Shown piece by piece: positions 9,206 to 63,294 of a stretch of 64,000 nucleotides of DNA. Position numbers and translations under genes: made by a program. The notes beneath the pieces are model-generated. The model saw only the letters and a program-made list of their open reading frames with translations, searched no databases and was not told where the DNA came from. The stretch is from the NCBI RefSeq assembly GCF_000143415.4, contig NW_003314348.1, positions 435,126-499,125 on the forward strand, written 5' to 3'. Positions within the stretch are counted from its first letter, which is position 1, and the number at the start of each line of letters is the position of its first letter. The stretch comes from Selaginella moellendorffii (Eukaryota > Plantae > Lycopodiophyta).

Positions 9206-9217
9206 GCTCCGATACCA
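9206..9217 (-). promoter_or_regulatory. Primer-binding site (tRNA-iMet type, one mismatch)
   Basis: TGGTATCGGAGC, 3 nt from the LTR; canonical is TGGTATCAGAGC. Confidence 0.9.
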
Positions 9218-31582: not shown

Positions 31583-32467
31583 TCAGACTGTTATTTTTTG
31601 CCTCCAACGCCTATACAATAATCTTGGAATTTCATCACTCTCCACACTATCAGGATTTAAACCCAATAGTAATGCCATCTCTTCTCTAATACGTCCACGC
31701 TCATGTTCAGTGGTTGAAGAACCCATCCGGTTGAGCAGATTATGGAGATGCGGATAGTGCTTGGCTAGACAATATACATGCCATAAATGATGACTGGTGT
31801 TTGTCCGATCAAATGGCTTCTGATATACCGTTCCATCTGCCATTTGGTTGATTTCTGCAGCCACCTCCTGGATTGGCTGGTTCTCTATCACCATCGCTCC
31901 AAGCCGTTTTGCAAGGTCCCCCAGAACATATGGTTTCTTTTCCCTAGTTTCCATACTGCATGAGATGGGGTGCACTGCATATGTGTGCGTGTTCGCTGTA
32001 GTTTTAATCGGCGAGTCATCGATGATGAGGATTTCACTTGACCTAGCAGTCCGGTTCATCACTACAGCCTCTGGCTTGACGAAGATGGGCTTGCTACCCC
32101 TCACATGGACCATAGTCAAGCAATCCTCCTGCATTAGGAGAAAGTCAAATGGTAATATTACTCGTGTCAGATCATGTATCATCTGTAGCAACGTTAATGC
32201 ATTGTGGCGCATCATGGATGTCCAAACTCCCAATTGCAAATTGAACCTGGCCCTCTGTTTTAAGTGTCGTATGGTCATTATTAGATCCCGCAGTTTCTCC
32301 CGTGTGATTAATGTGAATCTGTCTCTTTTGACCAACTTGCGACCGCAGGCTTTGGAGGGTGCAGTGACATTCAAGGACGAACCACGCTCATAGGAGAAAA
32401 GGACACCGTTCAGATCAAAAACGATACAGTACCTTCGCCGTGACTCTGAAATGAAATGCGTCAGCAT
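31583..32467 (-). CDS. FCP1/NIF-like HAD phosphatase domain exon (intact)
   Basis: Same motifs as 292-1176 (DLNGVL, GVWTS, IIDDSP). Confidence 0.8.
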   Translation of the reverse strand: MLTHFISESRRRYCIVFDLNGVLFSYERGSSLNVTAPSKACGRKLVKRDRFTLITREKLRDLIMTIRHLKQRARFNLQLGVWTSMMRHNALTLLQMIHDLTRVILPFDFLLMQEDCLTMVHVRGSKPIFVKPEAVVMNRTARSSEILIIDDSPIKTTANTHTYAVHPISCSMETREKKPYVLGDLAKRLGAMVIENQPIQEVAAEINQMADGTVYQKPFDRTNTSHHLWHVYCLAKHYPHLHNLLNRMGSSTTEHERGRIREEMALLLGLNPDSVESDEIPRLLYRRWRQKITV

Positions 32468-34666
32468 AAAAAATGGTACAAGTCAATTTTACCATCTACA
32501 ATATTAGCGAATGGTGCTCCCGATGGTCGTTGAGAGGGTTTTGGTCGAGGAAACATGAAGGGCGGAAATACTCTCCTCTGCAATGTGGGGTCAATCGCAT
32601 CCGATGGCATGTGGGCACATGCCATTTCAGCTGTAGACTCTGGTACAACTGGCTCAACAGTGGCATGGGGTGGTTCCGATGGCGTGTGATCACACGCCAT
32701 TTCAGCTGGTGCCTCCGTTGGCAAAGTGGACATGACCGAACAGGCAGCAAGGGCGGTGTAGGGAGGTTCCAATGGCACGTAGTCAGACAATTGGGCACAC
32801 GTTGAGTCCGTTGGAAATGAGGATACGACCAGCTCGGCAGCTGGGGCGGCCTCATGCGGGTCCAATGGCGCCTGGTCACCGTCAGTTGGATACGTGGACA
32901 AGATTGACTCAGTGGTATGGGCAGCATCAAGTGGAGCGTGGTCAGCTTGCTTGGCGTTGATATGGATAGTAGCCTCCACCAGCTCTGATGACTCTTGCAG
33001 GCAAGTAGAGTCCACTGGCGGATCCATATGCATGTCCAAATATCTCCCTTCGATTGAGATGGTATCCTCCCTACTGGCTACTAAAAACAAACTCATTAGC
33101 ACATTGAATCGACTATACTATATTTACCATCAACTGCTATTGAGGAACTAGGACCGATATCACTTGGGCACACTGCTGATTCTGAAGGATTGGACATAAG
33201 TTTCGACCCTTGCTTGGCACTATCCTTCCTCGACACTAAAGGCTAGAGTTTGTATCTTAATTCAACTAAATAATCTCTACTTACCATTTGCTCTGCGACC
33301 TACATGGACAATGTTAGAAATGGTAAAAGGTTAGGAATGGATGTACTATTATTTACCTGATGGTTTGTCTTGTATGACCTTCCTCCGCTGCTCTTTGGCC
33401 ACCTCAGGCTGGCCATCGTCGTCATCATCGTCGTCGTCGTTATTGTGAGGACCATCCAAGTCCTCTTCGTCCTCCTCTTCTTTGTCCTCCTCTTTGTCCT
33501 TCTGCTCTTCCTGCTCATTATCTTTCTCTGGCTCCTCATCCCCCTCCTGCATTTCTTCCATAGGCTGCTCAGGCTGGATAGCTTGTTCTTCCAGGACCAT
33601 CTTGGGAAAATCATCTGGCCGAGTCTCCATCTCAAAATACAAGACATCCATAGCCTGTTTTAGTGTGTGACCTAGGACTGTATCCACTCATCAGATACTA
33701 GCCTATGGTTGTATTTGCTTTGGATGTCGATACGGCTCACGTCGATTATATATACTTTGTTGGAATAGTGACAAGTACTATTATCTGCGACGATTTTTGC
33801 TGCCTCTTCTTGCTCTTTCTGCTCTTTGCGGCTCTTCTTTTTGGTGGGTGTAGTGTTCGAACCCGAGGCAATGGCATCACCGAGTAGCTTCTTTTTTGAA
33901 GCAGGAGAGTCGGATGTCAGCTTGAGCTTGACCACCCTTTTCTGCTTCGGGGTAGTTTCCAGATCGACCCCCTTCCCCTTCGTTTCGCGAACTGGAGGCA
34001 CTCTCAATGGCTCAATGTTGGAATATAGTTTTTGAACATCGCCGTAGGTGAGGTCCGTGGATTCCATGTGATCTTCATAGACCCGCAGCGTCTTTGAAAT
34101 TGTGGGCCTCCTAGACAACCTCTCCCTAGCTCCCTCTAGGAATTCCTCATAACCGCTGCCCCCCTCCGGGAAGCCGCTAGGATGTGCAAGGTGGATCTTG
34201 AAGGCGGACGCTGTCTCTACCACAAGTGCCAGTCCATATTCTTGCATGGAACTGCATGGAGTGTCTGTCACTTGGATGAGGATCCCCATGCATTCTTTTC
34301 TCCCACCATCTGTGTTGTACAGCCTCAGATCCTCGCCTTCCATCCCGAAAGTCCAACTGGTGAGCTCCTCCCCCTTCTCTGCATCCACATTGACAGTGGC
34401 TGGAAGAAGAACGCAATTCCTCGCCTGTTCAGAAATGCACAACAATTAGAGCTGACAGATGAAAAACTAGTAGCTGGAAATAACGTGAGGCCACACGCCA
34501 TTCACCACTGCATCAGATGTCTTGAGGCTGCATCCTAAGATGGCGTGAGGCTACACGCCATCTGTAACCGGACTGCACTCGAGAGCCCAATCGGTGCATG
34601 CCAATGTTGCTACTGAATGGCATGTGGCCTCATGCCATTTTCTACTTGGCCTAAAAGACTTACCAT
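31583..34666 (-). pseudogene. Multi-exon gene: N-terminal domain, acidic tract, low-complexity linker, C-terminal FCP1/NIF-like phosphatase. 5' part disrupted; open from ATG 33687 (634 aa after splicing)
   Basis: Predicted exons: ATG 34666-34664, 34451-33357 (TAA at 34448-34446, frameshift ~33680), 33299-33285, 33235-33128, 33080-32493, 32445-31583. All introns are GT-AG and all downstream exons join in frame. Confidence 0.75.
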
Positions 34667-35328: not shown

Positions 35329-38300
35329 GAATGGTATACAATGTCCTTCTTGATGACCCTGCAAAGAAGCATCTCGATCAGACACCACATGAGACCACAC
35401 GAGCCTTACAATGTTTCAGGGGCATTTGCCATAGATCCGGCCGTTATTTTGCTCCAAGATTCTACAGTTTGGTATGCATTGACCTTTCCATCGACACTGC
35501 AAAGGGACATCACAATCAGATGCGGGATCACAAGAAACCAACTTCACTAACTCTGGTTTCACCAAGATCTACGTAAGGAGTTATGAAATGAAAGGACCCT
35601 CTCTATTGAAATGTGTTTATGGTCCTGACATATCAAAGGATTTTGCATCAAGTTCTGTATTTGCATGTTTATCAAGCTACTGAATTACTAAACTGTAAAC
35701 CCTAAATATGTGGCAAATGCTGCGTGAAGAAAGATGCCCTTTCTGGGCAAATGCTGTAAGAGGCAGATGCCGAGTAGTTACACGGCGAATAATCTTGGCG
35801 CGGATCGCTGACATGGCATGGCAAAGTTCAAATCACTAATATGGCACAGCTGGATCGAGGCAAGGACATGATGTGACAAAGTTCAACGTCCGACAGCAAA
35901 GTCTATAAGCTACTTAGTTTGAAATTTGTCAGAGGAATTATAAGATCTGGTTTGTCAGAGGATTTGATGTAACGTTCAAGCGTGTGGGCTCATGCAATTT
36001 TGATCCCAAAAAATACACCAAAAAATGCTCGGCGTCATCTGGCGTTATCGTGGGGCCGCATGCCATTTTCAGGGGCACATTTGAGTATATTCCTAGAATA
36101 TTCTAACACGTGCGAGATTTTTTTGAGTTTTCTGGAGATCCAACCGTTAGATTGCAACTAAATTTTATAGAATGGTATACAATGTCTTTCTTGATGACCC
36201 TGCAAAGAAGCATCTCGATCGGACACCACATGAGACCACACGAGCCTTACAATGTTTCAGGGGCATTTGCCATAGATCCGACCGTTATTTTGCTCCAAGA
36301 TTTTACAGTTTAGTGTGCATTGACCTTTCCATCGACACTGCAAAGGGACATCACAATCAGATGCGGGATCAATTTTCCATTCTACTTTAGTCACTTAACC
36401 ACACCTCCGACCACTTGCAGGAGTCTCATTCACAACTTCCATCAGTCCAATTCAGGACTTGGGACTTGCTAGCACCAAGAATGGCATCCATGCCACTCAA
36501 CACTTGCACTTGGTCCAAGTGCTCCACATGTCCGGTCCCAAGACCGACACCTAAAGGTACCACTGACATCTTGGCCCGTTACGCTAAGGCCATGCCCATT
36601 CACCTTTGCTGCACTAGTGGTCCAATACCACTTGCATCACCGTCCCGTCTCTCCAAGACTGGGCCATCTGTCCACGAGTGGTCATCCTAGATCCACTCCT
36701 TAGCATCCTTGGGATGCCCACAGACCTGGGGAATCGCTTTCCCCAAAGTCCCTTTGTCAGTTCCTACCAAGTCCCTTTCTGCCCCTGGCCGTGTTTGCCA
36801 ACACTGCCACTGGGTCGAGGCCCACAAGCCCGACCACTAAGTCCCATGGTCCTCTGGGACTTCCTCACCACACGACTGTGTCCTTGGTCACTACCCCAGA
36901 GGACTGCTCCTCTTCCTTTCCATAGTCTAGGCCTTTGGGACAACATTTCGGAACACCGTGGCCTTATGCGAGCCACCTAGGTACTCTCCCCGCCTTTCGC
37001 CTTTAGGTGCTCTAGCCATGGGCTTAGAGAGAGGTTTCATTGCGCCACGCCTGGTATCCAAGTAGGTAGTGCCACCCACACTTGGATTGGGAGCATTGGC
37101 CAGTCGATCTCCCGGGGGAACTAGAGCCAGCTCTTGAACACTTCACCAAGCTACCCCACTTGTTGGTCCGTATTCACTCTAGTCTTGGACTTCCCAGTGG
37201 TCAGTTCATCACCCAACACTGGGTCTGGCCTTCCTGGGCCAAACTGGCCTTTCCTGGCCAAACTGGCTCCACTGCAGTCCTCCCCCTTACTATACTTTTG
37301 GAGCTCACCAAACCCCCCAGGGTCTGGGAAACGAACGCTTTGGGCTTTCACCCTCTCAGACTCAAACTCGGACTCGGACTTGGACTCGGACTCGGACTCG
37401 GACTCGGACTCGGACTTGGACTCGGACTTGGACTCGGACTCGGACTCGGACTCGGGCTCGGGCTCTGTCTCAGCCTTGGCCTCGGTCTCGGTCTCGGTCC
37501 CGGTCTCGGTCCCGGTCTCGGTCTTGGTCTCGGTCTCGGTCCCGGTCTCGGTCTCGACCTCGGACTCCATCTCGGACTCCATCTCGGGCTCCGTCTTGGT
37601 CCATCTCGGACTCCGTCTCGGCCCATCTCGGACTCCATCTCGGGTCCATCTCGGACTCCGTCTCGGTCCATCTCGGACTCCATCTCGGGTCCATCTCGGG
37701 TCCATCTCGGACTCCATCTTGGACTCCATCTCGGTCCACCTCGGACTCCACTACGGGTCCATCTCGGACTCCATATTGGACTCCATCTCGGACTCCACTT
37801 CGGACTCCATATCGGACTCCACTTCGGGTCCATCTCGGACTCCACTACGGGTCCATCTCGGACTCCATATCGGACTCCATCTTGGACTCCACTTCGGACT
37901 CCATATCGGACTCCACTTCGGGTCCATCTCGGACTCCAACTAGGGTCCATCTCGGACTCCATCTTGGACACTTCCACGTGTTATGTGTTGGTCCTTTTTG
38001 GGTCCCTTTTTGGAACCTCGCTTATTGCTCGCTTCGTGCTTGTTCCTTGAGCACTTTGTTAGGAGTTCCACTCCCACTCTCGACCTTTCAAGTCGGAGCT
38101 TTTACTCCAAATGTGTTATGCTCGTTTGGTTTTCACTTTGGCCACTACCACGTGGCACCATTTCCAGCTCCACTTTGGGGCCTAGGGATTTTGTGTCTCA
38201 CATCACCAGGATCTATGTAAGGAGTTATGAAATGAAAGGACCCTCTCTATTGAAATGTGTTTATGGTCCTAGGGGCATTGTGACATATCAAAGGATTTTG

Positions 38301-41551: not shown

Positions 41552-44540
41552 TTACTGAATAAATCCCACTTTAACGAAATAAAGCTTTTCACCAAAACAT
41601 GGCAGCCATGCTTTTTGCCACTCCTCAAGCCTCTCGAGCTTCCCCTTGTCCCGGAGGATAGCATGGTGAAGCCGTATTGCCGCCAGTGTAAGTCTCCACC
41701 ACTCTACCAGTACCTGTGATACTCTAAGCTGTGTCCCATCGAAGTGCACCCGGTTATGTGCTTCCCAAAGGGCCTGGACTCCCGTCGCACGCCATATCGC
41801 CCATCGAGCATGGCCAAGCGCCTCCCAAACGGGGACTCTATCTCCACCCCGATCACGTCCCACTGGACCTGGATCCCCCAGCCGTGTCGTCCTCTACACC
41901 TGATGTGTCGCAAGGCTGGGCCCTGGGCAGGACCCCTTGCTGCCTCGAACCAGTGGAGCACATCTCCACTGCGGGCTTCGAAATCCTGTGTCACACCCAG
42001 CTCCTTCCCTGCCTTAATAATCTGGCGCCACACCTCCTTTGCAGTGTCGCACTCCCACAGCGCATGCTTGACTGTCTCGATTTCGCCACACTCCTTGCAT
42101 CTGCGACTCGTGTCATCCTGGAATCGCTGTCCAACCGGGAGCCCATTGTTCGCTACCAACCACGAGGTGACTTTCACTTTTTCCTGCACGGGCAGCTTCC
42201 AGAAGTGAATTGTGTTGTCCACCACTTGCTCTACGTCAACCCCCTGTGCTATCCACTTCTGCCATAGCTTCGGAATCTCCTCTCTTGCCTCCTCTCGCGA
42301 TGTCAGTAGTCCATTCCGAGCTTCCTTGATTGCATAGGAGAAAAAGCTTCCCGTCCCTCGTCGCCATGCGGCAGGGTCCCAGTCCAGATCTTCTAGTAGC
42401 TGCTGTCGCCACCATATCAGTGATCCATCGCCCTCTAGCAGGTCTTCTGATTCCACCACGTCCAGCCTCTTGGGTGACTGCCTAAGCACGCTGATCCTGC
42501 CACGTACCTCATCGTCCGTGACATCCGACATCTCTTGTTTCTCACCCATTGGGAGAAGTGTGTCTCCTCTCATGATGTGAAAAGGCCATCCTATGTTGTG
42601 CTCTGGTGCGGCGACAAACCACACCTCCACATCTCCTTCTTCCCATGCTAGTGTAGGTGCAGTGAATGCTCGAGTCCATGTCCCCAGCGGACGTCGCACT
42701 GTATCGTGTTCCTCCCACTCTGTTTGCCGCTGGATTGCCACAAAGTCCCCTGCTTGAAGGCATCTTCTCGGCCACTTCGTCCCTGCTTTCGTGTCATTCA
42801 CCACTCGAAGAAGTCACAGAACGTCCAGCAGGATGTTGCGTCGCTTCCAAGGTCCAAACACTTGAGTTCTTCTCGTTGTTCACCACCAGTCCCGGTCAAC
42901 CACTCCCACCAGTTGCTTCATTGTCCGGAATCCGTTTGCATGCATTTTCCTCCAGATCGTGTGGTGTGCCTCTCGTCCCAGTGTCACACCTCCCACCTTG
43001 AACAGTGTGTTGAAAAATAGAGGCTGGTTAAGCCACTCCTCGGCCCTGGTTGGTGGTGTTTGCTCCAGCGAAAAGGCTCTCCACAGTCGGTGGAGGCTTT
43101 GGATGAAGTTGCCCCCTTTCACTACCTACGTCGGACCTTCTGTGAAGAGCCACCGTGGGTCCTCCTCTCACGGTTTGGCTGCATTGTGTTTGGGCCGAAT
43201 CGCTAGGAGGCTCTGCTAGAACATGAGTCGCCACGGCTGTCTCCCCTGTTGCAAGCCCATGAGAAAAATCTTATACCTCATCGCCTTTGCCATGTCACTG
43301 GGGTCAATGATCCCAAGCCCCCCTAGAATGCGCGGCCTCGCTGTAGATTGCCACGCCACCTTGGCCATGGTTTGCCCTGTAGCCAATGCTCCCCGCCACA
43401 TGTAAGTTCGCACCATCTGTCTCACCTTCTGCAGTGTAGTTTCCAGCACCGGCCAAATTGAGAGGTGGTACCAGATGCTGGGGAGGATCACGCTCTTGAC
43501 CACTATGATCCGAGCTGGGAGTCCGAGTTTCCTCGGTGTCCATTTCTGAACTGCAGCCTGGATCCTCCTGAGAAGCGTGTCGTCCTGCGTAGCCGCACTG
43601 TATTGGACCCCAACCTGGATGCCGAGGTACCGGGTGTCTTCGCCAGGGCGAAGCCACTGAAAGCCTATCTCCTGTCCCCAGGCCTCGATGCCTGGCTTTC
43701 CCCAGTTCACGCCTACTGACTTGTTCCAATTTATGGCTGCCCCTGCTGCCATGTTGAAGATCTCCAGCTTGGATTTTGCTGCGTCCAGGTTCCCCGGGGT
43801 GGCAAGTAGGAAGAGTGCGGTGTCATCTGCAAATGCCCCGTCTTGCAGCTCTTGCGTCACAGCTTGAGTTCCCGGGAGTTGTAGCCGTTCAGAGGGCAGC
43901 ACCAAGCCTTTTATATCCCCTCCATGTGTGAGGAAAGAGCCCAGTGTCTCTGCTACTATCAGGAACAGGTAGGGGGCAAGTGGACATCCCTGCCTCACTG
44001 AGCGTCCCAAGTGGAAGGTCGGGCCTATCTCTCCATTTAGTGTGACCCGGCTTGCAGCTCCCCTATATAGCAGTGAGATACACGAGATAGTCCTTGCTGG
44101 GATCCCTATCTTCCACATGCAATCCTCCAAGAAGTCCCAATCGACTCGATCGTAGGCCTTCTCAAAGTCTAGTAGCCACGCTACAATCTGTTGATTTGAG
44201 ACGTTTGCCCACCTCTGTGCTAGGAGGTACGTCCATATGTTTTCTGCAATCTGTCGTCTCGGCACGAATCTAGTCTGTTGTTCTCTGATGATGAGGGGCA
44301 TGACTGGCTGCAGCTTGAGTGCCATCACCTTTGCATATATCTTGTACGACGTGTTGAGCATGGTTATGGAGCGCCAGTTCCTGAGTTCCTAGAGGTCACC
44401 CCGTTTTGGGATCAATGCGATTTCTCCCTCTAGTATCTTTCCTGGAAGCACCCCTGTTTGTTGTGCGTCTCGCCATGTCTCCAAGAGCATCAGGCCAACG
44501 TCGTCCCAATACTCCTCATAGAATGCTAGGAAGAGGCCGT
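41552..44540 (-). mobile_element. 5'-truncated, pseudogenised L1-clade LINE ORF2 (RT + zf-RVT)
   Basis: WRSITMLN, LLDFEKAYDRVDW, RQGCPLAP, FADD (43216-44361); CKECGEIETVKHALWEC (zf-RVT). In-frame stops and frameshifts; cut at 44540 before the endonuclease. Confidence 0.93.
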
Positions 44541-47500
44541 CACGTGGCACCCTTTCGGCTCCACTTTGGGGCCTAGGGATTTGTGTCTCACACCATCTTT
44601 AGTACCAAGAGTTAGTTTTTAGGACAAGTGTGAAACTTACTAAATATGAAATGGCATTAGATTGTGAATTTGGATATGGGACTAACACTATTATGTTTAG
44701 GACAATCTCTACATTCCGTAGATATACCAAATTAGCAAATATAGACACTTTTTATAAATAGCTATTAGGACCAAATGGGACCAACACAAGGGGCATGATA
44801 GCGAGAGTGTTTGATAGATATGGTAAGTTATCATTTAGCAATATTGAGGGATTAATTTCAATATGCAAAGGTTTTTGTTACTAACCAGTGCAAGACACAA
44901 TAAAACAGGAACTCCTTACCAGGCTAAGTATGCTTAGCACATAGGAATTCTATCTTTATGTTTGTCTAGTCTAAGTACACTCGAAATGCTTAGTTAATTC
45001 CACTAACACAAGATGGACTGATAAAGGGTCTAGCAATATCAACCTCCTATTGTCATGATAGCAAGGAAAGAAGATTTTAAAGACTAGCTAGCAAGTAACT
45101 TTTGATACCACAATCATATTCATGACACCCCACTTATTCATCTATGTTCACTCTAGCTTTGAACTCCCTAGTGTTTATATCATCATCCACCAAGTGAACA
45201 TAGCCTTCTTTGGTCACACTAGTTCCTCTAGAGTCCTCCTCTTACTATCACATAGGGACTTATGAAACCCCCTAGGGTTTGAGAGAGGATTGCTTTGGGC
45301 TTTCACCCTTAAACATGGATTTAGTTTCAGACTCAAACTCAAACTTAGTCTTGGCCTTGGTCTCAATCATAGTCACAGTCTAGAACTTGCTCTTGGTCTC
45401 GCTCTTGAACTTGCTCTGAGACTCAATCTTGCACTTGACTTCTATGTGTCACGACATTTACCATGTGTTAGTCATTTTCTTATCCCTTTCTAGAGACTTG
45501 GTTATTAATTACTTTGTTCCTCAAGTATTTCTTTAGGAGTTCCACTCTTGCTTTCGACTTTCCGAGTTATAGCTTTTGATCTACATTGGCCACTACTATA
45601 TGGCTAATCTTCAGCTCTACTTTAGGACTCTGTTTTATACTTGTAGCGCACGTGGTTTGGACCCTTTATCCTATGGTGATTTACCATAGGATAACACCAC
45701 GAAGTGGAACCTAAACCCTCTTTGTGCCACGTGACAGATGCCACGTGTCACATGCCACGTGTCCATGCCACGTGTCCTTAGGAACCCGAGGTTCAGGGCC
45801 TTGGTGACGCCAAGGAGTGATGAAACCGGACCACGGAGCAACTCCCGAGCATATAGCCCAAGGAGCGAAGGGACAGGGGCCCGGAGCGACTTGGAACAGT
45901 CCTAGAGCAACCAGCATCCCAATGCCAAGACCAGCACGCAAAACGGAGCCAAACAGAGTTTGGCACTATTTCGGCATACCGGTGGCCTAACGCGAGGATA
46001 TAGGTACTCCACCAACTAGCATGGAATGGAACTTGGGCTTAGACCCAAGCCGGACGCAGAACAAGGACAGGCACGCAAGCGGGAGCTAGACTATGCCTCA
46101 GGTTGGTCGGCCATGCCCGACCTACCCACTATCCCTACTATACATTTGGAACCCCCCACAGCCCCCCCCCCCCTTGAGGAACACACGCTTTGGGCTTTCA
46201 CCCCAAGCCTCCCTTAGTACTAGGAGTTAGTCTCTGGGACAAGCTCGAAACTTACTAAATATGGAATGTCCTTAGATTGCGAATTTGGACACGGGACGAA
46301 CACCATTGTGTTCAGGCCGATCTCTACATTCCGTAGATATGCTAAATGAGCAAATCTGGACACTTTCCATAAATAGCATTTGGGACGAATTGAGACTAAC
46401 ACCAAGGGCATGATAGCGAGGGTGTTTGGCAGACACGGTAAGCTATCATCTAGCGATGTTGAGGGACCAAGCTCAATATCGCGGGGGTTCCCAACACTAG
46501 CAAGTGCAAGTCAACGAATGAGTTTCTCTAACCAGGTCAAGTATGCTTGACTAAATAGACACTTAGGAATTCCTTCCTTATGCTCATCTGGTCAAGTGCA
46601 CACGCGAGGACCAGTTTCTCAACTAGCTTAGGCGGAGACTGATAACGGGTCCAGCAATACCGACCTCCTGCCGTCGTGGCAGTAAGGTAAGAATATCCGA
46701 AAGGACTAGCCGACAGGTAACTTTCGATACCTGAAGTCACATTCGCGACACTCTCCCCCCCTTGGGAAGATCGACGTCCTCGTCGATGCATACTCCAGTC
46801 TAGAATACCGCCAAGGAAACAACTCCAGAAAAAGTTCACGGTACTCACACTATGTGAGAAATGCACCAACTTAAATGAGTGAGGGGGTAACCTCTTTGTC
46901 TAACGCGGATGCGCTACCAGCTCAGACACCTTCCGGCCGTCACCGACAAGGAAATGACCAACGGAGTCAGCCACCCCTGCTGCTCTGGGAGTCACCCAGC
47001 TTACAAAAGTGTGATATGCCCCTGCCCGCAGGGACATAGAGAGAGAAGCCAGAGGCCCCAACCCTCCTAAGCAAAGAAACCAAACCCGTCGGTAAGGTTT
47101 AGATAGGCTACTGTAAACAGGCAGGTAGAGTTGTTTACACGGTCACGCCCTTTCACAGAATAAGGAACATCGACAGAGAGGCGGGTTATGTGACCAGTCG
47201 ACAGTAGCTACCCCATGACTAGAGATTTCACCATGCACACGAAGTGCCGAAGCCAGTCTGCCTATACTGGCCCAAACGCAAAGATCAATGGATGGACAAT
47301 ATCAAAGTCAGAGACAATGATATCTGAGAAGCTTAATTACTAGTGATTATATCTTAGAGTAGAACACAAAAGTATTCTAAACAAGTTATCATCCGATAAA
47401 CCAGTAGTATTGTAGATAGGAACCACCAAGATCACTATCATTGGAAAACATAGGATGCACCATCCAACAAAATTCAATAGCAAGTATATCATCAAGTAAA

Positions 47501-50500: not shown

Positions 50501-51540
50501 AGCTTAGCATAATGGACTACCATTGAGAATCCAGTCAAAGCTACTACAATGTTATTTCGTGCAAGTAGACTAGCTTCTCCATCAACCACTTTGGGGTTGA
50601 TCATCATTTAACCAAGCAACTTCGTAAACACATTGCTCATTATTACATGGATATGATATAGAAATCACAATGACTTGATCATCAATTGAGTAACGCAATG
50701 AGCAATGCCTATGTCATTACTTCACATGTTTATGTGAGTATCAAATGCCAACTCGATTCGACAAAATGCAACATAAATGCCACACTCCACCAATAGAGGT
50801 TTATGACACCCAACACCAATAATTTTTGTTCACAACACGGACAAGCTCATGCCACTCTCTTTCCGACCAAACTCAACACTAATCCAACACCAAGCTACTC
50901 AAGGAGCAATAGCAAGGTTCCCCGGAAAAGAATTGAGCATTGCAACCCAAGTCTTCCGATAGCAAGTCTAGACAAAATGGTTTAGCGTTTCACTGCTATC
51001 CATCCCACAACTCACCATTTGTAAGACCATCATCTCCAATATGCATCAAGGTAGGGACTCTTGATTGCATAATGTGAACACAAGCAATGAGTTAACACCT
51101 CGTTGCAAATCATCTCTCCAAGAAGAGAAGATGATTTACGTATTTGATCCTCCGTCCTCGATGACTCTCTTTTCGGTCTCATCTTTGACCAAACCTCAAG
51201 CTTGCTTTCGCACTGCCTTCAGTTCAATCCAAGAAAAGTTTATGAGAGAGCACGGCAATGATTACTTGAACCAATAGACTATTCCCTACAATCTTGATTG
51301 ATCCACTTATAATCATGCCTAGGAAAGATCCACTAGTGTCGCGCTAAATAGCTACGGACCAGCCTATTTGCCACTCATAGCAAACCCAGGTAGGTTTGCT
51401 TTCACCCATGGTACAAGGAATAACTCATGGAACCACCGATATGCTAACATTAATCCTGCCAACTCTAAGTGTAACCTCGAGTTGCTAATGCGCCTCACTC
51501 ACGAGCCCAAGCGCAAACTCGTGTAATGGAACAACTCAGT

Positions 51541-52157
51541 TGTGAGACACAAAATCCCTAGGCCCCAAAGTGGAGCCGGAAAGGGTGCCACGTGGTAGTG
51601 GCTGAAGCGAGAGCCAAACGAGCGTAACACGTTTGGACCAAAAGCTCCGACTTGAAAAGTCAAGAGCGGGAGTGGAACTCCCAAAGAAGGGCTCGAGGAA
51701 CGAGCACGAAGCGAGCAAAAAGCGAGGCTCCAAAAAGGGACCCAAAAGGACCAACACATGACACGGGGGAGTGTCCGAGATAAACTCGAGTTGGAGTCCG
51801 AAGTGGAGTCCGAGATGGACCCGAGTTGGAGTCCGAAGTGGAGTCCGAGATGGACCCGAGTTGAAGTCCGAAGTGGAGTCCGAGATGGACCCGAGATGGA
51901 GTCCGAGATGGAGTCCGAAGTGGAGTCCGAGGTGGACCCGAGATGGACCCGAGATGGAGTCCGAAGTGGAGTCCGAGGTGGACCCGAGATGGACCCGAGT
52001 TGGAGTCCGAGGTGGAGTCCGAGATGGACTCGAGATGGAGTCCGAGATGGAGTCCGAGATGGAGTCCGAGGTGGACCCGAGATGGACCCGAAATGGAGTC
52101 CGAGATGGAGTCTGAGATGGAGTCCGAGATGGAGTCCGAAGTCGAGACCGAGACCGG

Positions 52158-52189
<32 letters not shown>

Positions 52190-55100
52190 TCGGGACCGAG
52201 ACCAAGACCGAGGCCGAGGCCGAGACCGAGCCCGAGCCCGAGTCCGAGTCCGAATCCGAGTCCGAGTTCGAGTCCGAGTCCGAGTCCGAGTCCGAGTCCG
52301 AGTCCGGAGCCTGAGAGGGTGAAAGCCCAAAGCGTTCGTCTCCCAGACCCTGGGGGGTTTGGTGAGCTCCAAAAGTATAGTAGGGGGAGGACTGCAGTGG
52401 AGCCAGTTTGGCCAGGAAAGGCCAGTTTGGCCCAGGAGGGCCAGACCCAGTGTTGGGTGATGAACTGACCACTGGGAAGTCCAAGACTAGAGTGAATACG
52501 GACCGACAAGCGGGGTAGCTTGGTGAAGTGTTCAAGAGCCGGCTCTAGTTCCCCCGGGAGATCGACTGGCCGATGCTCCCAGTCCAAGTGTGGGTGGCAC
52601 TACCTACTTGGATACCTGGTGTGGCTCAACGGAACCCGCTCTAAGCCCATGGCTAGAGCACCCAAGGGCAGAAGGCGAGGAGAGTACCCAGGTGGCTCGC
52701 GTAAGGCCACGGTGTTCCGAAATGTCGTCCCAAAGGCCCAGACTGTGGAAAGGAAGAGGAGCAGTCCTCTGGGGTAGTGACCAAGGACACAGTCGTGTGG
52801 TGAGGAAGTCCCAGAGGACTGTGGGACTTAGTGGTCGGGCCTGTGGGTCTCGATCCAGTGGCAGTGTTGGCAAACACGGCCAGGGGCAGAAAGGGACTTA
52901 GTGGGGACTGACAGAGGGATATTGGGGAAGGCTATTCCCCTTGTCGGTGGGCATCCTAAGGATGCTAAGGAGTGGATCTGAGATGACCACTCACGGATGG
53001 TTTGCCTAGTCTTGGAGGGCCAAGACGGTGATGCAAGTGGTGTTGGACCACCAGTGTGACCAAGGTAAATGGGCATGGCCTTAGCGTAACGGGCCGGTAC
53101 GTCGGTGATACCTTGGGGTGTCGATCATGGGATCGGACACGTGGAGCACTTGGACCAAGTGCTAAGGTTGAGTGGCATGGATGCCATTCTCGGGGCAAGC
53201 AAGCCCCAAGTCCTGAATTGGACTAATGGAGGTTGTGAATGAGACTCCTCCAAGTGGTCAGACATGTGGTTAAGTGACTAAAGTAAAATGGAAAATTTAG
53301 TCCCTTACAATTTGGTATCGGAGCTGTTCCTTAGTCCGACTTTTATTGGTGCTCAAGTATATCACCACTAGTGTTGGCATCGGAAGGTCCGAGGAGTGGG
53401 CCTATCCTTGAGGAGTAGCAAGTCGGGAAGACATGGCTCTCCATTACAGTTCATGTGTGAACTTGTAGACGAGGTGGTGGATAGAAAAGGGCCAATAATG
53501 GAACGACTTTGGGATCTTGGGAACAGTGCAAGGTTTTCCTCATTGAGTTGAGGATGTGATCCGGATGAGCATTTGTCTCAGCAAATTGGCTTAGGTTGTT
53601 GTGGTAAACAACTAAAGTTGGGATCACGGGAAAGATAGAGACTCCAAAACAATAAAGGAGTCACAAGATTATCCTCATATAGTTGAGGTTGGTGCTCATG
53701 AATGTGAGACCAAAGGTAATGACCGTGGAAGGTCAAATACGGAAGAGGACTCAAGTCCTTGAAATGGTAGCCGGGGCTACCTCTAACAAATGCTGGAACA
53801 ACCCAAGGAGTTGGGGGTGTATTAAGTGGATGAGTTGGTATTCTCATCACATGGACAAGTAGTCCTAAGGGGCAAAGGTTGCCCCCAGAGAACAAAATCA
53901 AGTGTCGGAGTAACACTTGTGAAAATAGTCCTTTTGAGTAGGACCGGAATGCAAGAAGTGTATTCCAGTGAGCTAGTGCCTCACAAGTAGGACCTTACGG
54001 GTCGGTGGATTAACCAAGTCCAAAACTGTTAGACGACTCAAGTAGAGTCAAGGGATGGTCCTAAAAAGGACTGAATGAAGCATTTGGACTGAGGTGCGTT
54101 GTACCCCACAAAGGATGGGGGGGATCATAGGATCCAAGGATGAGAACAGAGAGTATCTCATTGATGGCAAAATGTGCCATGTTAAAGTTGTGGGAAAGGT
54201 GTTCCCAGAAGGAAACAACTTTGACATAAAGTTGTGTGTGACCTCTATGGGGAAGTGCTAACGGATGGTTGGCATGAGAAAGAGCGGTGTTAGTCTTGGC
54301 AAAGACTTAGACACGAAGGGAAATGTCATAGAGGTAGGCTCGTGGAGCCGATGGTGTGGAGACACCAAATGTGCCAAGGTGTGATACCTTGAGGCTATGT
54401 TGGTGGGTTCATGAAAACCCCTTGCCAAAGGAATCCCAATGGAAATGGGAATGGTATAGCTTAAGCTGCAGAGCATGCAGTTGGAGTGTGGTGACCCAGA
54501 TAGTGATGGAGGTGTGAAAGCACCAAGCAATGAGTTGTAGGACTTGACAACTATGAGGCAACTAAGCAAGAGGTGCAAAATAACTGGTTAAACGGGTAGA
54601 AGGTAGCTACCCAAGACTTCTAGTATAGGGAAGTCGGATATACCCTTACGGGGGATAAGTTGCTTATGTTGCGATATAGTAAGTCAATGTCATAAAAGGA
54701 AATACTCATTGTCAAGAAAGCCATCATTGGGACACCCGAACACTCTAGAACACCAGAAGGTGGTGTTTGATGTCGCGAGGGCAATGGATAAAGCCCAAGG
54801 GACTAAGTCCCTAGCGAATGATGGATAGAAGGTGCTATCCAAATGTCCAAGGTTGCGGAGACAGGAGAGGACTGTTTACCCAAGTTGGACAAAGCCAAAA
54901 ATGGAATTTTGGCAAGGCTAGTGATGGGCATGTAAAGGCCCATAAGCAACAATGTAACCCCAGTGTGTGGGATTATAAGCTGAGCATACCCGGATTGAGG
55001 AACCACTCCCCGGGCTATTGGGTAGGTTCATCCCTAAGAATACTTGCTAAGGCATGATAGAAAGTGCAAAGCTATCCTCCTGGTCTGGAGGAGAATGACC

Positions 55101-57973
55101 GAAGGAAAGGTGTGAAGCCAAAGGCAAGTAGTGTTGGGATGGAACGGAACCATAGAAATCAAAGGGCATATCCAACAGTGGTTATGAAAGTTGGGAGTGG
55201 AGAATCAAGAGGGTGCTCGAGGATGTTGTTGCTAGCAACCGTGATGCCATGGAGAGTCTAAAATATGGAATTGTCCATGTTAGACTATATGGCAACTATA
55301 AAGCTTGCGAAAGGGGAGGCCTTAGCAAGCTGAGGGACAGAGTTCCTTCAAGGTTCCCAAAGACGATTCTAGGTAGCGTAGTACCTAGAAAGGTCAAGTG
55401 TAAATGGTTCATGGAACGCGCGAAATCAGAGTGGCGCAGCAGAAGCGTGGTCTTGAAGCTTGCCATGAGGCAAGGTTATCAAGGTTAGGGAAGTAGTTCC
55501 CGAGTGTTCAAAGAGAGGGCTTTGAACGAAAGTCGATGGTCAAGGACTTTCACGCTTATGCAGGAACCATGTTACAATGGTCGGAGGACTTGCCAAGTGA
55601 GATTGGCCCGTCGGGGGAACAAAGACCCTAGTTGAAGGTGATATCTTCAAAAAGGGTGGGCCAGGGGGCCGAGCATGGAGGATTCCATGCATGATCACAG
55701 ACATGTCAAGTGAGAGGACTTGGCAGTGTGGAGGAACTAGGTTCCTAAGCTGTGATCTGTAGCGCGCTTTAAAAATAAGTTGGTGCACCGGCGTGGGGAG
55801 TCACGCCAGGCATCTTGTGTGATGCCGTCCGTAGATGCATATACGGAGGTTGGGTTCGAGTCCCGACCCTCTAGTGCTTGGGTTCGAGTCCCAAATCACT
55901 AGGGCGTGGTGATGGTTTGGAATATGAGGACACTCATATTTCGGTGGTCATGGACTCTCAGTGGGGAGACTGGTTTGGGCACACCGCCAAGCGAGGGATG
56001 CCTCGGAGTCATGATGCACGGTTAGATTGCTTAGTGTGAAAGCTCAGCATATCTAACTTGAACGCTTTGGTGCAAGTGGCACCAAGGTCGTGGTGAGTGA
56101 GATGGGGACACCTAATCTCAGTTGCTATGAACCCTTGGCCGTAAGGGCTGGCTTGGGTGCACCGCCAAGTGTGGGGGATGCCCCCGGGGTTATAGTCAAC
56201 AACTTGGAGGTCTAGAAGACCAAGTACCTCTTGGCAACTCTATTAAGGTGCCAAGGTGAGATCACTAGGTGATCTTATGGCCAGATAAGGACAAGGTCCT
56301 TAGTTGGCTAAGGAATGAAGTTCCTGGTTCAAAATGTTGAAATTGAACTGTTTAAGGTGGTGTGGCTTGGTCGTGATGACCAAGTGGGAAGAGCACCTAA
56401 GGGAAATAAACTATGTCCGTGAGATGGCATAGTGAGTCCGAGGAAAGTAGTCTCTATAAAAGACCCATGGGAGGGTCACGAAGTTGGGCCGTGGATAGAG
56501 CCCATAGCAGAAGATGCTAAAGAGACGTACTAGGGGTGAACATCCTCCGGACTTGGCAAAGAAGAGTCTTTGTTATGGAACCGAAACAATATCTCAAGGA
56601 GGGAGGTAGAGATTCGATGTTGCTTGGTGCAACAATCAACGGATAGGAGCAAAAGATGAGTGGCCAAGATAGGGCCGTGGAATCCCTTGGGGGGAATCCA
56701 AGTGACAAAGTTAGGCGAGGAACACTAATGTGTTGGACGCTAACAAGTTGCGGGAAAGGAAGTGTGTTTCCAAGGAGGGATTCCAAAATGCTCCGATTTG
56801 GCGAAAGTGGAAGCTCCAAGGGAGGGAGCGGTAAGGTAGCCAAATGATAGGGCCATGAACAGCCCTAGCACAAAGTATGATAACTGGAACTTTGGCACGA
56901 AATAGAAGAGAGGATGATGGTGCCCTCGAATAGAGAACTTCCTAGGATGGGAAGTGGAGTTGCACAAAAGGTGTAAGGCAAGGTGTCGGAGACACCTAGG
57001 AAATTGACTCCAAGGAGTCAAAATTCAAAGTTCCAAAGTGCAGAGGTTATATCGATGGAAATTGAGACTACTCGAGAAGGAGTAGTGGGATTGACTTAGA
57101 GAAGGGTCTCTAAGAGGTTTAGCGAGAACTAAACCAATAAAAGGAGAGAACCATTACATGTGGTCCAATCAGTCTCTAAGTTGGAGAGACTACGCTCCTT
57201 AAAGGATGGACAAGGCATGGTGAGCCTTTGGTGTCAAACCATAGACAAAGATTGGCTAGGTGCCAAGGATGGAAAAGGTAACACGTGTGGGTGTTACTTT
57301 ATGAAAGGGTTTACCATTCGATGAGGACATCGAACTTCGTCTATAGGTGGTGGAGTTGTGAGACACAAAATCCCTAGGCCCCAAAGTGGAGCCGGAAAGG
57401 GTGCCACGTGGTAGTGGCTGAAGCGAGAGCCAAACGAGCGTAACACGTTTGGACCAAAAGCTCCGACTTGAAAAGTCAAGAGCGGGAGTGGAACTCCCAA
57501 AGAAGGGCTCGAGGAACGAGCACGAAGCGAGCAAAAAGCGAGGCTCCAAAAAGGGACCCAAAAGGACCAACACATGACACGGGGGAGTGTCCGAGATAAA
57601 CTCGAGTTGGAGTCCGAAGTGGAGTCCGAGATGGACCCGAGTTGGAGTCCGAAGTGGAGTCCGAGATGGACCCGAGTTGAAGTCCGAAGTGGAGTCCGAG
57701 ATGGACCCGAGATGGAGTCCGAGATGGAGTCCGAAGTGGAGTCCGAGGTGGACCCGAGATGGACCCGAGATGGAGTCCGAAGTGGAGTCCGAGGTGGACC
57801 CGAGATGGACCCGAGTTGGAGTCCGAGGTGGAGTCCGAGATGGACTCGAGATGGAGTCCGAGATGGAGTCCGAGATGGAGTCCGAGGTGGACCCGAGATG
57901 GACCCGAAATGGAGTCCGAGATGGAGTCCGAGATGGAGTCCGAGATGGAGTCCGAAGTCGAGACCGAGACCGG

Positions 57974-58005
<32 letters not shown>

Positions 58006-59125
58006 TCGGGACCGAGACCAAGACCGAGGCTGAGGCCGAGACCGAGCCCGAGCCCGAGTCCGAGTCCGAATCCGAGTCCGAGTTCGAGTCCGAGTCCGAG
58101 TCCGAGTCCGAGTCCGAGTCCGGAGCCTGAGAGGGTGAAAGCCCAAAGCGTTCGTCTCCCAGACCCTGGGGGGTTTGGTGAGCTCCAAAAGTATAGTAGG
58201 GGGAGGACTGCAGTGGAGCCAGTTTGGCCAGGAAAGGCCAGTTTGGCCCAGGAGGGCCAGACCCAGTGTTGGGTGATGAACTGACCACTGGGAAGTCCAA
58301 GACTAGAGTGAATACGGACCGACAAGCGGGGTAGCTTGGTGAAGTGTTCAAGAGCCGGCTCTAGTTCCCCCGGGAGATCGACTGGCCGATGCTCCCAGTC
58401 CAAGTGTGGGTGGCACTACCTACTTGGATACCTGGTGTGGCTCAACGGAACCCGCTCTAAGCCCATGGCTAGAGCACCCAAGGGCAGAAGGCGAGGAGAG
58501 TACCCAGGTGGCTCGCGTAAGGCCACGGTGTTCCGAAATGTCGTCCCAAAGGCCCAGACTGTGGAAAGGAAGAGGAGCAGTCCTCTGGGGTAGTGACCAA
58601 GGACACAGTCGTGTGGTGAGGAAGTCCCAGAGGACTGTGGGACTTAGTGGTCGGGCCTGTGGGTCTCGATCCAGTGGCAGTGTTGGCAAACACGGCCAGG
58701 GGCAGAAAGGGACTTAGTGGGGACTGACAGAGGGATATTGGGGAAGGCTATTCCCCTTGTCGGTGGGCATCCTAAGGATGCTAAGGAGTGGATCTGAGAT
58801 GACCACTCACGGATGGTTTGCCTAGTCTTGGAGGGCCAAGACGGTGATGCAAGTGGTGTTGGACCACCAGTGTGACCAAGGTAAATGGGCATGGCCTTAG
58901 CGTAACGGGCCGGTACGTCGGTGATACCTTGGGGTGTCGATCATGGGATCGGACACGTGGAGCACTTGGACCAAGTGCTAAGGTTGAGTGGCATGGATGC
59001 CATTCTCGGGGCAAGCAAGCCCCAAGTCCTGAGTTGGACTTATGGAGGTTGTCAATGAGACTCCTCCAAGTGGTCAGAGGTGTGGTTAAGTGACTAAAGT
59101 AAAATGGAAAAGTTAGTCGCTTACA
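51541..59125 (+). mobile_element. Family A copy 3, nested in the family-B element
   Basis: 1769-bp LTRs 51541-53309 and 57357-59125, TSD TCAGT, PBS TGGTATCGGAGC 53313-53324, PPT AGGTGGTGGAG 57345-57355. Confidence 0.96.
55790..56200 (+). ncRNA. Putative structured RNA domain of family A (homologues on minus strand at ~6331-6740 and ~27140-27545)
   Basis: Consecutive hairpins, two T-arm-like stems, and two paralogous four-way junctions with compensatory changes (paired by eye). Confidence 0.6.
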
Positions 59126-59801
59126 TCAGTCCACCCTATAAGCCCAAGAGCAAGCTCACATAATATGGAACAAAAAGGTAACCAAAACCTATCCCAAGGA
59201 ACGATTGCGAAGTCTTTGCACCAAAACGTGTACCCACTCGGATCATCGTTTTCATCTCTGCGTATGCAACGAGACTAGTTGCCCAATCTCATTGGATAGT
59301 TCTCGCCGAGACTCATTCTCTGATACCAAATGTAACGCACGTGGTTTTGACCCTTTATACTATGGTGATTTACCATAGGATAACACCACGAAGCGGAACC
59401 TAAACCCTCTTTGTGCCACGTGACAGATGCCACGTGTCACATGCCACGTGTCCTTAGGAACCCGAGGTTCAGGGCCTTGGGCCACTGAACAAACGAACGG
59501 TGCCAAACTCCCAAGCGTGACGCCAAGGAGTGATGAAACCGGACCACGGAGCAACTCCCGAGCATATAGCCTAAGGAGCGAAGGGACAGGGGCCCGGAGC
59601 GACTTGGAACAGTCCTAGAGCAACCAGCATCCCAATGCCAGGACCAGCACGCAAAACGGAGCCAAATAGAGTCTGGCACTATTTCGGCATACCGGTGGCC
59701 TAACGCGAGGATATGGGTACTCCACCAACTAGTATGGAATGGAACTTAAGCTTAGACCCAAGCCGGACGCAGAACAAGGATAAGCACTCAAGCGGGAGCT
59801 A

Positions 59802-59901
59802 NNNNNNNNNNNNNNNNNNNNNNNNNNNNNNNNNNNNNNNNNNNNNNNNNNNNNNNNNNNNNNNNNNNNNNNNNNNNNNNNNNNNNNNNNNNNNNNNNNN
59901 N
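59802..59901. other. Assembly gap (100 N) inside family-B LTR
   Basis: N-run next to a poly-C tract; the sister LTR (46089-46161) implies about 73 bp are missing. Confidence 0.97.
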
Positions 59902-61387
59902 CCCCCCCCCCCCCCCCCCCCTTGAGGAACACACGCTTTGGGCTTTCACCCCAAGCCTCCCTTAGTACTAGGAGTTGGTCTCTGGGACAAGCTCGAAACT
60001 TACTAAATATGGAATGTCCTTAGATTGCGAATTTGGACACGGGATGAACACCATTGTGTTCAGGCCGATCTCTACATTCCGTAGATATGCTAAATGAGCA
60101 AATCTGGACACTTTCCATAAATAGCATTTGGGACGAATTGAGACTAACACCAAGGGCATGATAGCGAGGGTGTTTGGCAGACACGGTAAGCTATCATCTA
60201 GCGATGTTGAGGGACCAAGCTCAATATCGCGGGGGTTCCCAACACTAGCAAGTGCAAGTCAACGAATGAGTTTCTCTAACCAGGTCAAGTATGCTTGACT
60301 AAATAGACACTTAGGAATTCCTTCCTTATGCTCATCTGATCAAGTGCACACGCGAGGACCAGTTTCTCAACTAGCTTAGGCGGAGACTGATAACGGGTCC
60401 AGCAATACCAACCTCCTGCCGTCGTGGCAGTAAGGTAAGAATATCCGAAAGGACTAGCCGACAGGTAACTTTCGATACCTGAAGTCACATTCGCGACAAT
60501 ACCTTCTATATATAGTTAAGTAATGTAGTTTCAAAATAAACTATAGATATTCAATATGTATAGAATATTCTTATCTCAATCATATACTATATATTGCATA
60601 TATATATTTTATTGTTTACAACCTTCAAAACTATACAGTGTAATTTAAAACTATAATTCTAAACTATATCTATATACATGGACTTGTAATTTCTTTCTAG
60701 TTGGATGATAAAGGATTTGTAAATTGCAATATCCAGACTCATTCATCATCTTGAACATCCCAGCCTGTTCTACAAGGACCCACAAAGAACACACCACACT
60801 ACTTATAGCATATGTGATTATAAAATGAGATTTAGATATATTGTCAAGGTAGGTCTTTGAAACTTTAGGAGATATATAAAATAACCATTAAAGGCTTTTT
60901 TATTGTCCCTCTTTCAATTGATTTCAAGAAAGAGATATAACACTACCTAGAACCTCCACTTGGGAAATATTTCCTCCTATCCTCCTAGTCACAACCTCCT
61001 TCTAGTAGAGACTCGAGGATATCCTTCAGCAACTCTTAGGCATACTTTGTCCTAACATTTTTAGTAATTAAGCTTGCAATATTTAAGAAGCAAAAAGTGT
61101 ACATGCTATTTAATATCCCATCTATAGAATTGGAGAAGCTATATTGCATGCACTTCCAATAATATCCCAATTGTTGGACTCTCATTTTGTATTAAAGCTT
61201 TGTATAGCTTTTGGCTTTAGATATTTCTATACATATATTACTCACTTTGTAGTAAATTGCAAGGCTCTAAAGGAGCATGTTGTGTGTGATGAGATCCAAC
61301 TAATGATGCCTTTATGTTGCATATTCATTGAGCAATCCCTCTTAGTTGAGGATACTTTTCAAGAAAATATTAATAATAGTGTTATAG

Positions 61388-62171: not shown

Positions 62172-63294
62172 TGTCGCAAATGTGACTTTAGGTATCAAAA
62201 GTTATATGTCGACCAGTCCTTACGGACACTCTTTCTTTACTGTCACGACAGTAGGAGGTTAGTATTATTGGATACGTTATCGGTCTCCACTTGAGTTAGT
62301 TGAGACATTGCTCTTCGCATGTGCATTTAATTATATGAGCATAAGGATGGAATTCCTAAGTGCTATTAATCAAACATACTTGACTTGGTTAGAGAAACTC
62401 ATTCATTAACTTGCACTTGCTAGTGTTGGAAACTCCCGTGATATTGAGCTTGGTCCTTCAATATTGCTAAATGATACCTTATCGTGTTTGCCAAACACCC
62501 TCGCTATCATGCCCTTTGTGTTAATCTCATTTCAGTCCTAATTGCTATTTATAGAAAGCATCTAGATTTGCTCATTTGGCATATCTACGGAATGTAGAGA
62601 TTGTCTTGAACACAATGGTGTTCGTCCCATGTCCAAATTCACATTTTAGTGCCACTCCAAATTTAGTAAGTTTCAAGCTTGTCATAGAGACTAACTCTTA
62701 ATACTAACGGAGGCTTGGGGTGAAAGCCCAAAGTGTGTGTTCCTCAAAGGGGCCTATAGGGGGTTCCAAATGTATAGTAGGGATAATGGGTAGATCGAGC
62801 ATGGCCAACCAACCTAAGGCATAATTTAACTTCCGTTTGCGTGCCTTTCCTTGTTCTACATCCGACTTAGGTCTAAGCCTAAGCTCCATACAATGCTAGC
62901 TGGTGGAATACCCATATCCTCACGTTAGGCCACTAGTATGCTAAAATAGCGCCAAACTCTATTTGGCTCCGTTTTGCGTATTAGTTTTGGCATTGGGATG
63001 CTGGTTGCTCTAAGATTATTCTAAGTCGCTTCGTGCTCCTGTTCCTTCACTTCTCGGGCTATACGCTCGGAAGTCATTCCATGCTCTAGTGCCATTGCTC
63101 CTTGGCTCCATGCTTGGGAGTTTAGCACCGTTCCTTTGTTTAGTGGCCCAAGGCCTTGAAACTCGGGTTCAACACCACTATCCTTTGGACACATGGCATA
63201 TGACACGTGGCACATAGACGTTTTAGGTTCCGCTTCCATGGTTATCCTATGGTAACTCACCATAGGATAAAGGGTAAAAACCACATGCGCTATA
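62172..63294 (+). mobile_element. Family-B solo LTR
   Basis: TG..TA termini, TSD ACTCT, colinear with the reverse complement of 59331-60498. Confidence 0.92.

Follow-up and report, generated by a model that had tools for sequence, protein, structure and literature searches.

A duplicated hairpin-plus-junction RNA module as a candidate recognition signal in a gene-less LTR retrotransposon of Selaginella moellendorffii

We detected two paralogous RNA modules in the internal domain of a non-autonomous retrotransposon with long terminal repeats (LTRs) from the lycophyte Selaginella moellendorffii. The element lies in a stretch of 64,000 nucleotides (contig NW_003314348.1 of assembly GCF_000143415.4, positions 435,126 to 499,125 of the forward strand), which is referred to as the window and whose numbering is used throughout. 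Three copies of the element, named A, B and C, are present in the window, and each module, of about 102 nt, consists of a hairpin with a GACA loop followed by a four-way junction of 76-80 nt. The region of the modules is, in all likelihood, a real RNA structure under selection, and we consider the modules a credible candidate for the signal by which this element, which has no genes, is recognized by proteins supplied from elsewhere.

In copy C, module 1 begins with a hairpin of 11 bp (hairpin 1, 55918-55943, plus strand), the core of which (55921-55940) consists of 8 perfect pairs around the GACA loop, and continues into unit 1 (55944-56019, plus strand), a four-way junction in which a closing stem of 14 pairs encloses three arms of 4, 6 and 4-5 bp with loops of 6, 8 and 4 nt. 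Module 2 repeats this arrangement on the same strand with hairpin 2 (56098-56120), whose core at 56099-56119 has 5+3 pairs, one bulged A and again a GACA loop, and with unit 2 (56121-56200), of the same architecture as unit 1. Between the modules lies a spacer (56020-56091) that forms two hairpins (56020-56058 and 56062-56091) and is not duplicated. When units 1 and 2 of copy C were folded singly, the junction was both the minimum-energy and the centroid structure in each of them. The modules of the other copies lie on the minus strand, at 6331-6613 in copy A (module 1 at 6512-6613, module 2 at 6331-6434) and at 27140-27422 in copy B (module 1 at 27321-27422, module 2 at 27140-27243). In their minimum-energy folds the hairpin, the closing stem and arm 3 were recovered every time, and arms 1 and 2 took on another arrangement in copy B as well as in the second module of copy A. 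The two-module region of 291 nt folds with a z-score of -5.55, which none of 200 shuffled sequences equalled; the hairpin and junction folded together gave z = -3.97 for module 1 and -2.36 for module 2, and the units alone are unremarkable in stability (z = -1.9 for unit 1 and -1.8 for unit 2). A previous reading of this DNA, made from its letters alone (hereafter the sequence-only reading), had proposed a GACA hairpin followed by a 76-80-nt unit whose closing stem encloses three arms; energy-based folding agrees with this for both modules, and the motifs that it quoted are all present where it had placed them.

Plain BLAST revealed the paralogy of modules 1 and 2 over 35 nt only and, because of this short reach, the modules were compared with covariance models. 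Model R1 is a covariance model that combines the module 1 sequences of the three copies with the fold of that module, while model R2 is a sequence-only model of the same alignment. In each of the three copies, R1 matched the whole of module 2 (53.5-61 bits, E = 1e-9 to 3e-11), and R2 matched it at 24.8-33.9 bits (E = 1e-6 to 2e-9). Across the 64 kb, R1 found nothing beyond the modules above 14.5 bits (next best E = 0.35). Each element carries exactly two modules, 180 nt apart; further copies of the module elsewhere in the element were looked for with BLAST and with R1 and were rejected by both. The two modules, which are about 68-72% identical, are true paralogs, and their duplication is older than the split of the three copies. 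The sequence-only reading had described two paralogous modules approximately 180 nt apart that are kept in all three copies, and had suggested a covariance model as a check; the matches of R1 and R2 to module 2 in every copy support both statements.

The sequence-only alignment and the structural alignment put the modules in identical register, so that the counts of base pairs are not an artefact of fitting. In the six modules, 99.1% of the 228 pair cells are standard pairs, as compared with 37-44% in controls slid by 1-3 columns. Both sides of the pair have changed in 8 of the 39 pairs (0-2 in the slid controls), and 7 of these separate module 1 from module 2. RNAalifold, applied to the six modules unaided, returned the same architecture, with compensation in 9 pairs and -5.4 kcal/mol as the covariation term. 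The pair counts also uphold the differences between the modules that had been noticed before, namely UCAU/AUGA versus CUAU/AUAG in the closing stem and GAGG/CCUC versus GGGG/CCCC in an arm. The third such difference, GACUC/GAGUC versus GACCC/GGGUC, holds too, although copy C reads AACCC/GGGUU, which is itself compensatory. Unpaired columns are conserved at least as well as paired ones in most comparisons: the loop is GACA in all six hairpins and GAUG in all six arm-3 loops, and the 8-nt arm-2 loops of the two modules of copy C agree at 6 of 8 positions. Hairpins with a GACA loop and at least 4 pairs occur nowhere else in the internal domain. Overall, the stems have drifted in sequence yet stayed paired, and three loops (GACA, the 8-nt loop of arm 2 and GAUG) are nearly fixed. 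Drifting stems with fixed loops are the usual mark of an RNA that is recognized through its loops.

The composition of the pairs also points to the strand that folds. G·U pairs make up 39 of the 228 cells (17%) in the six modules, and the opposite strand would have A·C mismatches in their place, which indicates that the sense RNA is the folded one. Besides, the antisense RNA folds more weakly and loses arms, and with DNA folding parameters both strands fold weakly and about equally. The folded molecule is thus most likely the genomic sense transcript of the element.

The comparison among the three copies covers 291 columns, of which 33 are variable. Changes on both sides of a pair were observed among the copies in two pairs, both in module 2: one in hairpin 2, where copy B differs from copies A and C, and one in the closing stem of unit 2, where copy C differs from copies A and B. 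When the observed changes were re-placed randomly on sites of the same base and CpG status, the substitutions in module 2 from copy C to copy B broke no pair, against 3.6 expected (p = 0.002), and the other directions gave p = 0.035-0.2; an alignment shuffle control is powerless with three rows. The evidence for covariation among the copies is thin. The modules lie in the block of the internal domain that is conserved best when the three copies are compared (55410-56210, plus strand), in which copies C and B are 86-95% identical per 100 nt, compared with about 82% overall. This block includes the longest run over which the internal domains of the three copies do not differ at all (55872-55958, plus strand, 87 nt), which spans hairpin 1, the 5' strand of the closing stem of unit 1 and the second of two neighboring hairpins that resemble the T arm of a tRNA and are described below. 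It exceeds the second-longest run (53322-53367, 46 nt), which surrounds the primer-binding-site-like tract of the element.

Copy C, whose internal domain harbors the modules discussed above, is a complete LTR retrotransposon of 7.6 kb on the plus strand (51536-59130 with its target-site duplication), as delimited by self-BLAST and a read-out of its boundaries. The target-site duplication is 5 bp long (TCAGT, 51536-51540 and 59126-59130), and the LTRs at 51541-53309 (5') and 57357-59125 (3'), both on the plus strand, have a length of 1.77 kb, TG...CA ends and 99.5% identity across 1772 nt. A tract of 12 nt that starts with TGG and resembles a primer-binding site lies 3 nt past the 5' LTR (53313-53324, plus strand), and a short purine-rich, G-rich tract precedes the 3' LTR. 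The internal domain between them (53310-57353, plus strand, 4044 bp) is non-coding, purine-rich and hairpin-rich on both strands. Copy A (3365-10828, minus strand) has LTRs that are about 99% identical outside their tandem repeats, and copy B (24152-31520, minus strand) is the most diverged of the three, with about 83% identity to copy C. A solo LTR of the same family is present at 36365-38202 (minus strand) and is 87% identical to the LTRs of copy C. The two LTRs within a copy differ by 0.5-2%, as compared with 7-17% between copies, so that most of the divergence must have accumulated among lineages that continued to replicate. The LTRs of copy C contain an array of a 12-nt tandem repeat with about 35 units, followed by a 6-nt array (51787-52201 and 57603-58017, Tandem Repeats Finder). 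The solo LTR and the LTRs of the other two copies contain the 12-nt array too, with a length that varies among copies. These arrays hold open reading frames (ORFs) of 236-369 codons open in several frames and on both strands, the translations of which are low-complexity repeats.

The internal domain has 68-91 stop codons per sense frame in all three copies. Its longest sense stop-free stretch, of 110 codons, lies next to the modules and had no match in a protein word search, and none of 20 stop-free stretches of at least 45 codons on both strands matched Pfam. The family had been described as ORF-less in the sequence-only reading, and these results are in agreement with that. Considering the direct LTRs with TG...CA ends, the target-site duplication and a long internal domain (4044 bp) without gag, pol or env, we conclude that the element belongs among the non-autonomous LTR retrotransposons of the large retrotransposon derivative (LARD) type. 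LARDs and miniature terminal-repeat retrotransposons (TRIMs) are reported to specify conserved RNA secondary structures (PMC7215508), and such a structure is found in the internal domain here.

A gene-less element would have to keep only cis-acting signals and, since nothing else is needed by an element of this type, the module would most likely be a site recognized by protein. We hypothesize that, on the genomic RNA, it may serve as a recognition site for proteins supplied in trans, with the capsid/nucleocapsid protein (Gag) of a helper element as the partner of first choice; in this way the RNA would be chosen for packaging. Contact would then be made at the conserved loops, and each RNA would offer two sites for binding because of the duplication. 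In some retroviruses, packaging and dimer formation involve repeated hairpins that share one tetraloop (PMC516450), and repeated stem-loops with a conserved loop, one of the features of such packaging signals, are what the GACA loop in six out of six hairpins represents. Packaging or recognition by Gag is a conceivable specific role of the modules, which we put forward tentatively and with less than even confidence. The packaging, dimerization and export roles suggested by the sequence-only reading are likewise inferred.

Several observations weigh against this proposal, or against selection on the fold itself. Known retroviral packaging signals sit in the 5' leader, whereas the modules start about 2.6 kb further downstream than the primer-binding site; besides, the leader of the element has a conserved run of its own, the 46-nt one mentioned above. 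The GACA loop is not self-complementary and contacts between loops in a dimer, as described for other tetraloops, are therefore not evident, and no long-range pairing was found between the invariant run and the leader, the U5 end or the 3' end (z of -0.6 to -1.2). There is no helper element in the 64-kb window, and no members of the family were found outside it: exact 23-24-mers from two invariant stretches had no match in the metagenome, viral or genome contigs searched, and a degenerate pattern of the core gave only chance matches in bacterial and viral contigs (best R1 score 19.6 bits, E = 0.27). Module 1 exhibits no covariation among the copies, of which there are only three, copy B has two pair-breaking changes in it, and the substitution tests based on the structure of copy B itself were not significant. 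Finally, windows of 150 nt across the internal domain have mean z-scores of -2.0 to -2.9 on both strands of all three copies, against -0.2 to -1.0 for DNA of the window outside the elements (internal domains at 53310-57353, 5121-9217 and 25987-29948). The entire internal domain is thus rich in hairpins, and foldability alone does not single out the modules. Their region is set apart by its compensated duplication, by loops that are fixed and by its invariance. A palindrome in the arm-2 loop of unit 2 was also considered as a dimer contact; it occurs in copy C only, and hence is not a conserved candidate.

The hairpin richness of the internal domain could also be taken to mean that the modules are merely the best-preserved piece of a generic structured domain with no specific recognition role, that is, an array of local hairpins that compacts the RNA, is a source of small RNAs or is a by-product of the origin of the domain. 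Besides the z-scores, this would account for ten hairpins with the stem words YTTGG...CCAAG between 55974 and 57267, where shuffled sequences have 0.25 on average and 2 at most; CCAAG itself is found 22 times in the internal domain, where about 3 occurrences would be expected. The UUGG..CCAA arm singled out by the sequence-only reading is indeed present, but it belongs to this wider pattern of hairpins. Several of the downstream hairpins, however, are not retained in copies A and B, and a generic domain leaves the fixed loops amid stems that change between paralogs, the G·U bias of the sense strand and the 87-nt invariant run unexplained, so we judge this reading distinctly unlikely. The previous suggestion that the fold is selected and apparently undescribed can be kept in part: its pairing is maintained by two-sided changes and it matches no Rfam family, but its foldability is not special and structured domains of LARDs and TRIMs have already been described (PMC7215508). 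A second set of alternatives arises from likeness to tRNA. Two adjacent hairpins at 55848-55904 (plus strand) have the stem (5-7 bp) and the 7-nt loop (UUCGAGU) of a tRNA T arm; the loop matches the T loops of two tRNAs called by ARAGORN, taken from two other loci (L001 and L039), at 6 of 7 positions. The first hairpin is degraded in copy B, and the second, which has an extra outer stem of 8 bp, is invariant in all three copies and falls within the 87-nt run. The units of the modules are, moreover, 76-80 nt long with three arms, and tRNA-like structures have been reported to promote the movement of RNA in plants (PMC8047152). The T-arm-like hairpins and the cloverleaf junctions might therefore mimic tRNA and engage host factors that bind, export, process or stabilize tRNA, with a role in the nuclear export, stability or movement of the unspliced RNA of the element. 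An export element would be free of positional constraint, in agreement with the site in the middle of the element. Against such a recruitment stand the degradation of the first hairpin in copy B, the 4-nt loop of arm 3 where a T loop would be expected, the closing stem of 14 pairs without linker bases, and the absence of any ARAGORN call in the window or any hit of the Rfam tRNA model at E <= 10 on the 801 nt tested; we consider it unlikely. In a bolder version, which we regard as quite improbable, the whole conserved block would be a cluster of tRNA mimics by which a gene-less RNA borrows the tRNA-handling factors of the host in order to leave the nucleus or to travel from cell to cell or over long distances to dividing or germ-line tissue, either independently of or alongside recognition by a helper capsid.

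The same likeness might instead be inherited, if the region were a captured relic derived from tRNA (a short interspersed nuclear element, SINE, or a tRNA gene fragment with the box B of polymerase III) that was rearranged and duplicated and has no present function. Both T-arm-like hairpins contain GGTTC, the conserved box B core in tRNA-derived LTR elements (PMC10886601), and the arm-1 region of unit 1 can also be drawn as a D-arm-like stem of 4 bp. As leads only, a longer box B motif was found in the window exclusively in the copies of the element, and no box A was found at a usable distance. No tRNA gene was called by ARAGORN in the 64-kb window, Rfam had no match at its gathering threshold there, and its tRNA and ribozyme models gave none at E <= 10 on 55600-56400 (801 nt). 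Dead sequence would not hold 39 of 39 pairs through about 30% divergence of the paralogs, and the motif is internal here, unlike that of Helenus, which is part of the LTR; such a relic is improbable. The description of the units as tRNA-sized four-way junctions stands as regards size and shape, but the detectors call nothing, and we do not assign the region to tRNAs or tRNA-like structures because of this and because the units have neither a T loop (a T arm with a 5-bp stem and 7-nt loop is confined to the hairpins at 55848-55904) nor linker bases; the likeness serves as a lead to host factors and to a possible origin. The Rfam search that the sequence-only reading had also suggested thus returned no family, and its idea of a ribozyme found no counterpart. 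Four-way junctions do occur in some ribozymes. Non-autonomous plant LTR elements carrying ribozymes, the retrozymes, are known as well (PMC11722881). The ribozymes of retrozymes are located in the LTRs, however, no Rfam ribozyme model matched at either threshold, and the junctions have no or minimal unpaired linker bases, which leaves nothing to form a catalytic core; a self-cleaving ribozyme of a new or known class is therefore very improbable. The chance that the region is a decayed coding sequence, which had been named as an outcome that would overturn the proposed fold, or a coincidence of hairpins is negligible: stop-free stretches of 52-54 codons do overlap the modules, but the number of stops per sense frame and the lack of Pfam matches on either strand argue against coding, and the E-values of the covariance model and the compensatory changes argue against coincidence. 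Of the readings weighed here, recognition of the modules on the genomic RNA by proteins supplied in trans is the one that we prefer.

Direct repeats of about 1 kb (45642-46700 and 59331-60448, 13.7 kb apart, 89-99% identical) flank copy C, an inverted partial copy of this repeat lies at about 62749-63170, and no ORF of at least 150 codons is found between the flanking repeats; a second element bounded by repeats, or a segmental duplication, may thus enclose copy C. An inverted duplication of 98% identity (1-1239 and 31520-32758), one arm of which terminates at the outer boundary of copy B's 5' LTR, encodes an ORF of 294 codons with a weak match to the NIF phosphatase domain, for which a protein word search found no relative and there is no exact protein record. 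Fragments of reverse transcriptase ORFs of the plant long interspersed nuclear element (LINE) type, with RVT_1 and zf-RVT domains, are present at 41704-44361 (minus strand) and 16538-17065 (plus strand) and are unrelated to the modules.

How the gene-less LTR retrotransposons of plants are recognized by the machinery that copies them is largely unknown, and a considerable part of a genome can consist of such elements. Because it is compact and duplicated, with stems compensated at the level of the paralogs and fixed loops, the module is a concrete candidate for a recognition signal, and it can be traced across the family and in possible helpers. R1 also provides a ready search model for annotating this family, which belongs to a kind that protein-based repeat finders miss.

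The modules share features with several known systems. Retroviral packaging signals with GACG tetraloops in alpha- and gammaretroviruses (PMC516450) are alike in that two hairpins with an identical 4-nt loop lie on the genomic RNA of a reverse-transcribing element and in that the loop is kept while the stems vary. They differ in that the loop here is GACA and not self-complementary, that each hairpin is joined to a four-way junction, and that the hairpins, separated by 180 nt, are found 2.6 kb away from the primer-binding site instead of in the 5' leader; the likeness is one of working principle and not of membership. With tRNAs and the tRNA-like structures of plant viral 3' ends and mobile plant mRNAs (PMC8047152), the units have in common a length of 76-80 nt and a junction of four helices, with a T-arm-like stem and loop in the neighboring hairpins, but they are without linker bases or a T loop and their closing stem has double the length of an acceptor stem. 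Helenus/TRIMp3 and Cassandra (PMC10886601, PMC7215508) are likewise non-autonomous LTR elements with a short tRNA-like GGTTC motif. Their small-RNA-like sequence, however, is part of the LTR and acts as a polymerase III promoter, whereas the motif here is internal, apparently has no box A partner and belongs to an element of 7.6 kb, which is not a miniature; since the GGTTC motif is confined to the internal domain, the element was not assigned to Helenus/TRIMp3 (PMC10886601). The closest likeness is to LARDs such as Sukkula of barley, complete LTR elements with a target-site duplication, a primer-binding-site-like tract, a purine-rich tract and a non-coding internal domain of several kb with conserved predicted RNA structure, presumed to depend on a helper (PMC7215508; bioRxiv 10.64898/2026.03.01.708851). 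The LTRs here are 1.77 kb long, and the likeness of the element to LARDs is one of description. A non-coding LTR element with conserved RNA structure was thus known already; the duplicated hairpin-plus-junction module, not found described in the searched literature, is, as far as that literature shows, what this element adds.

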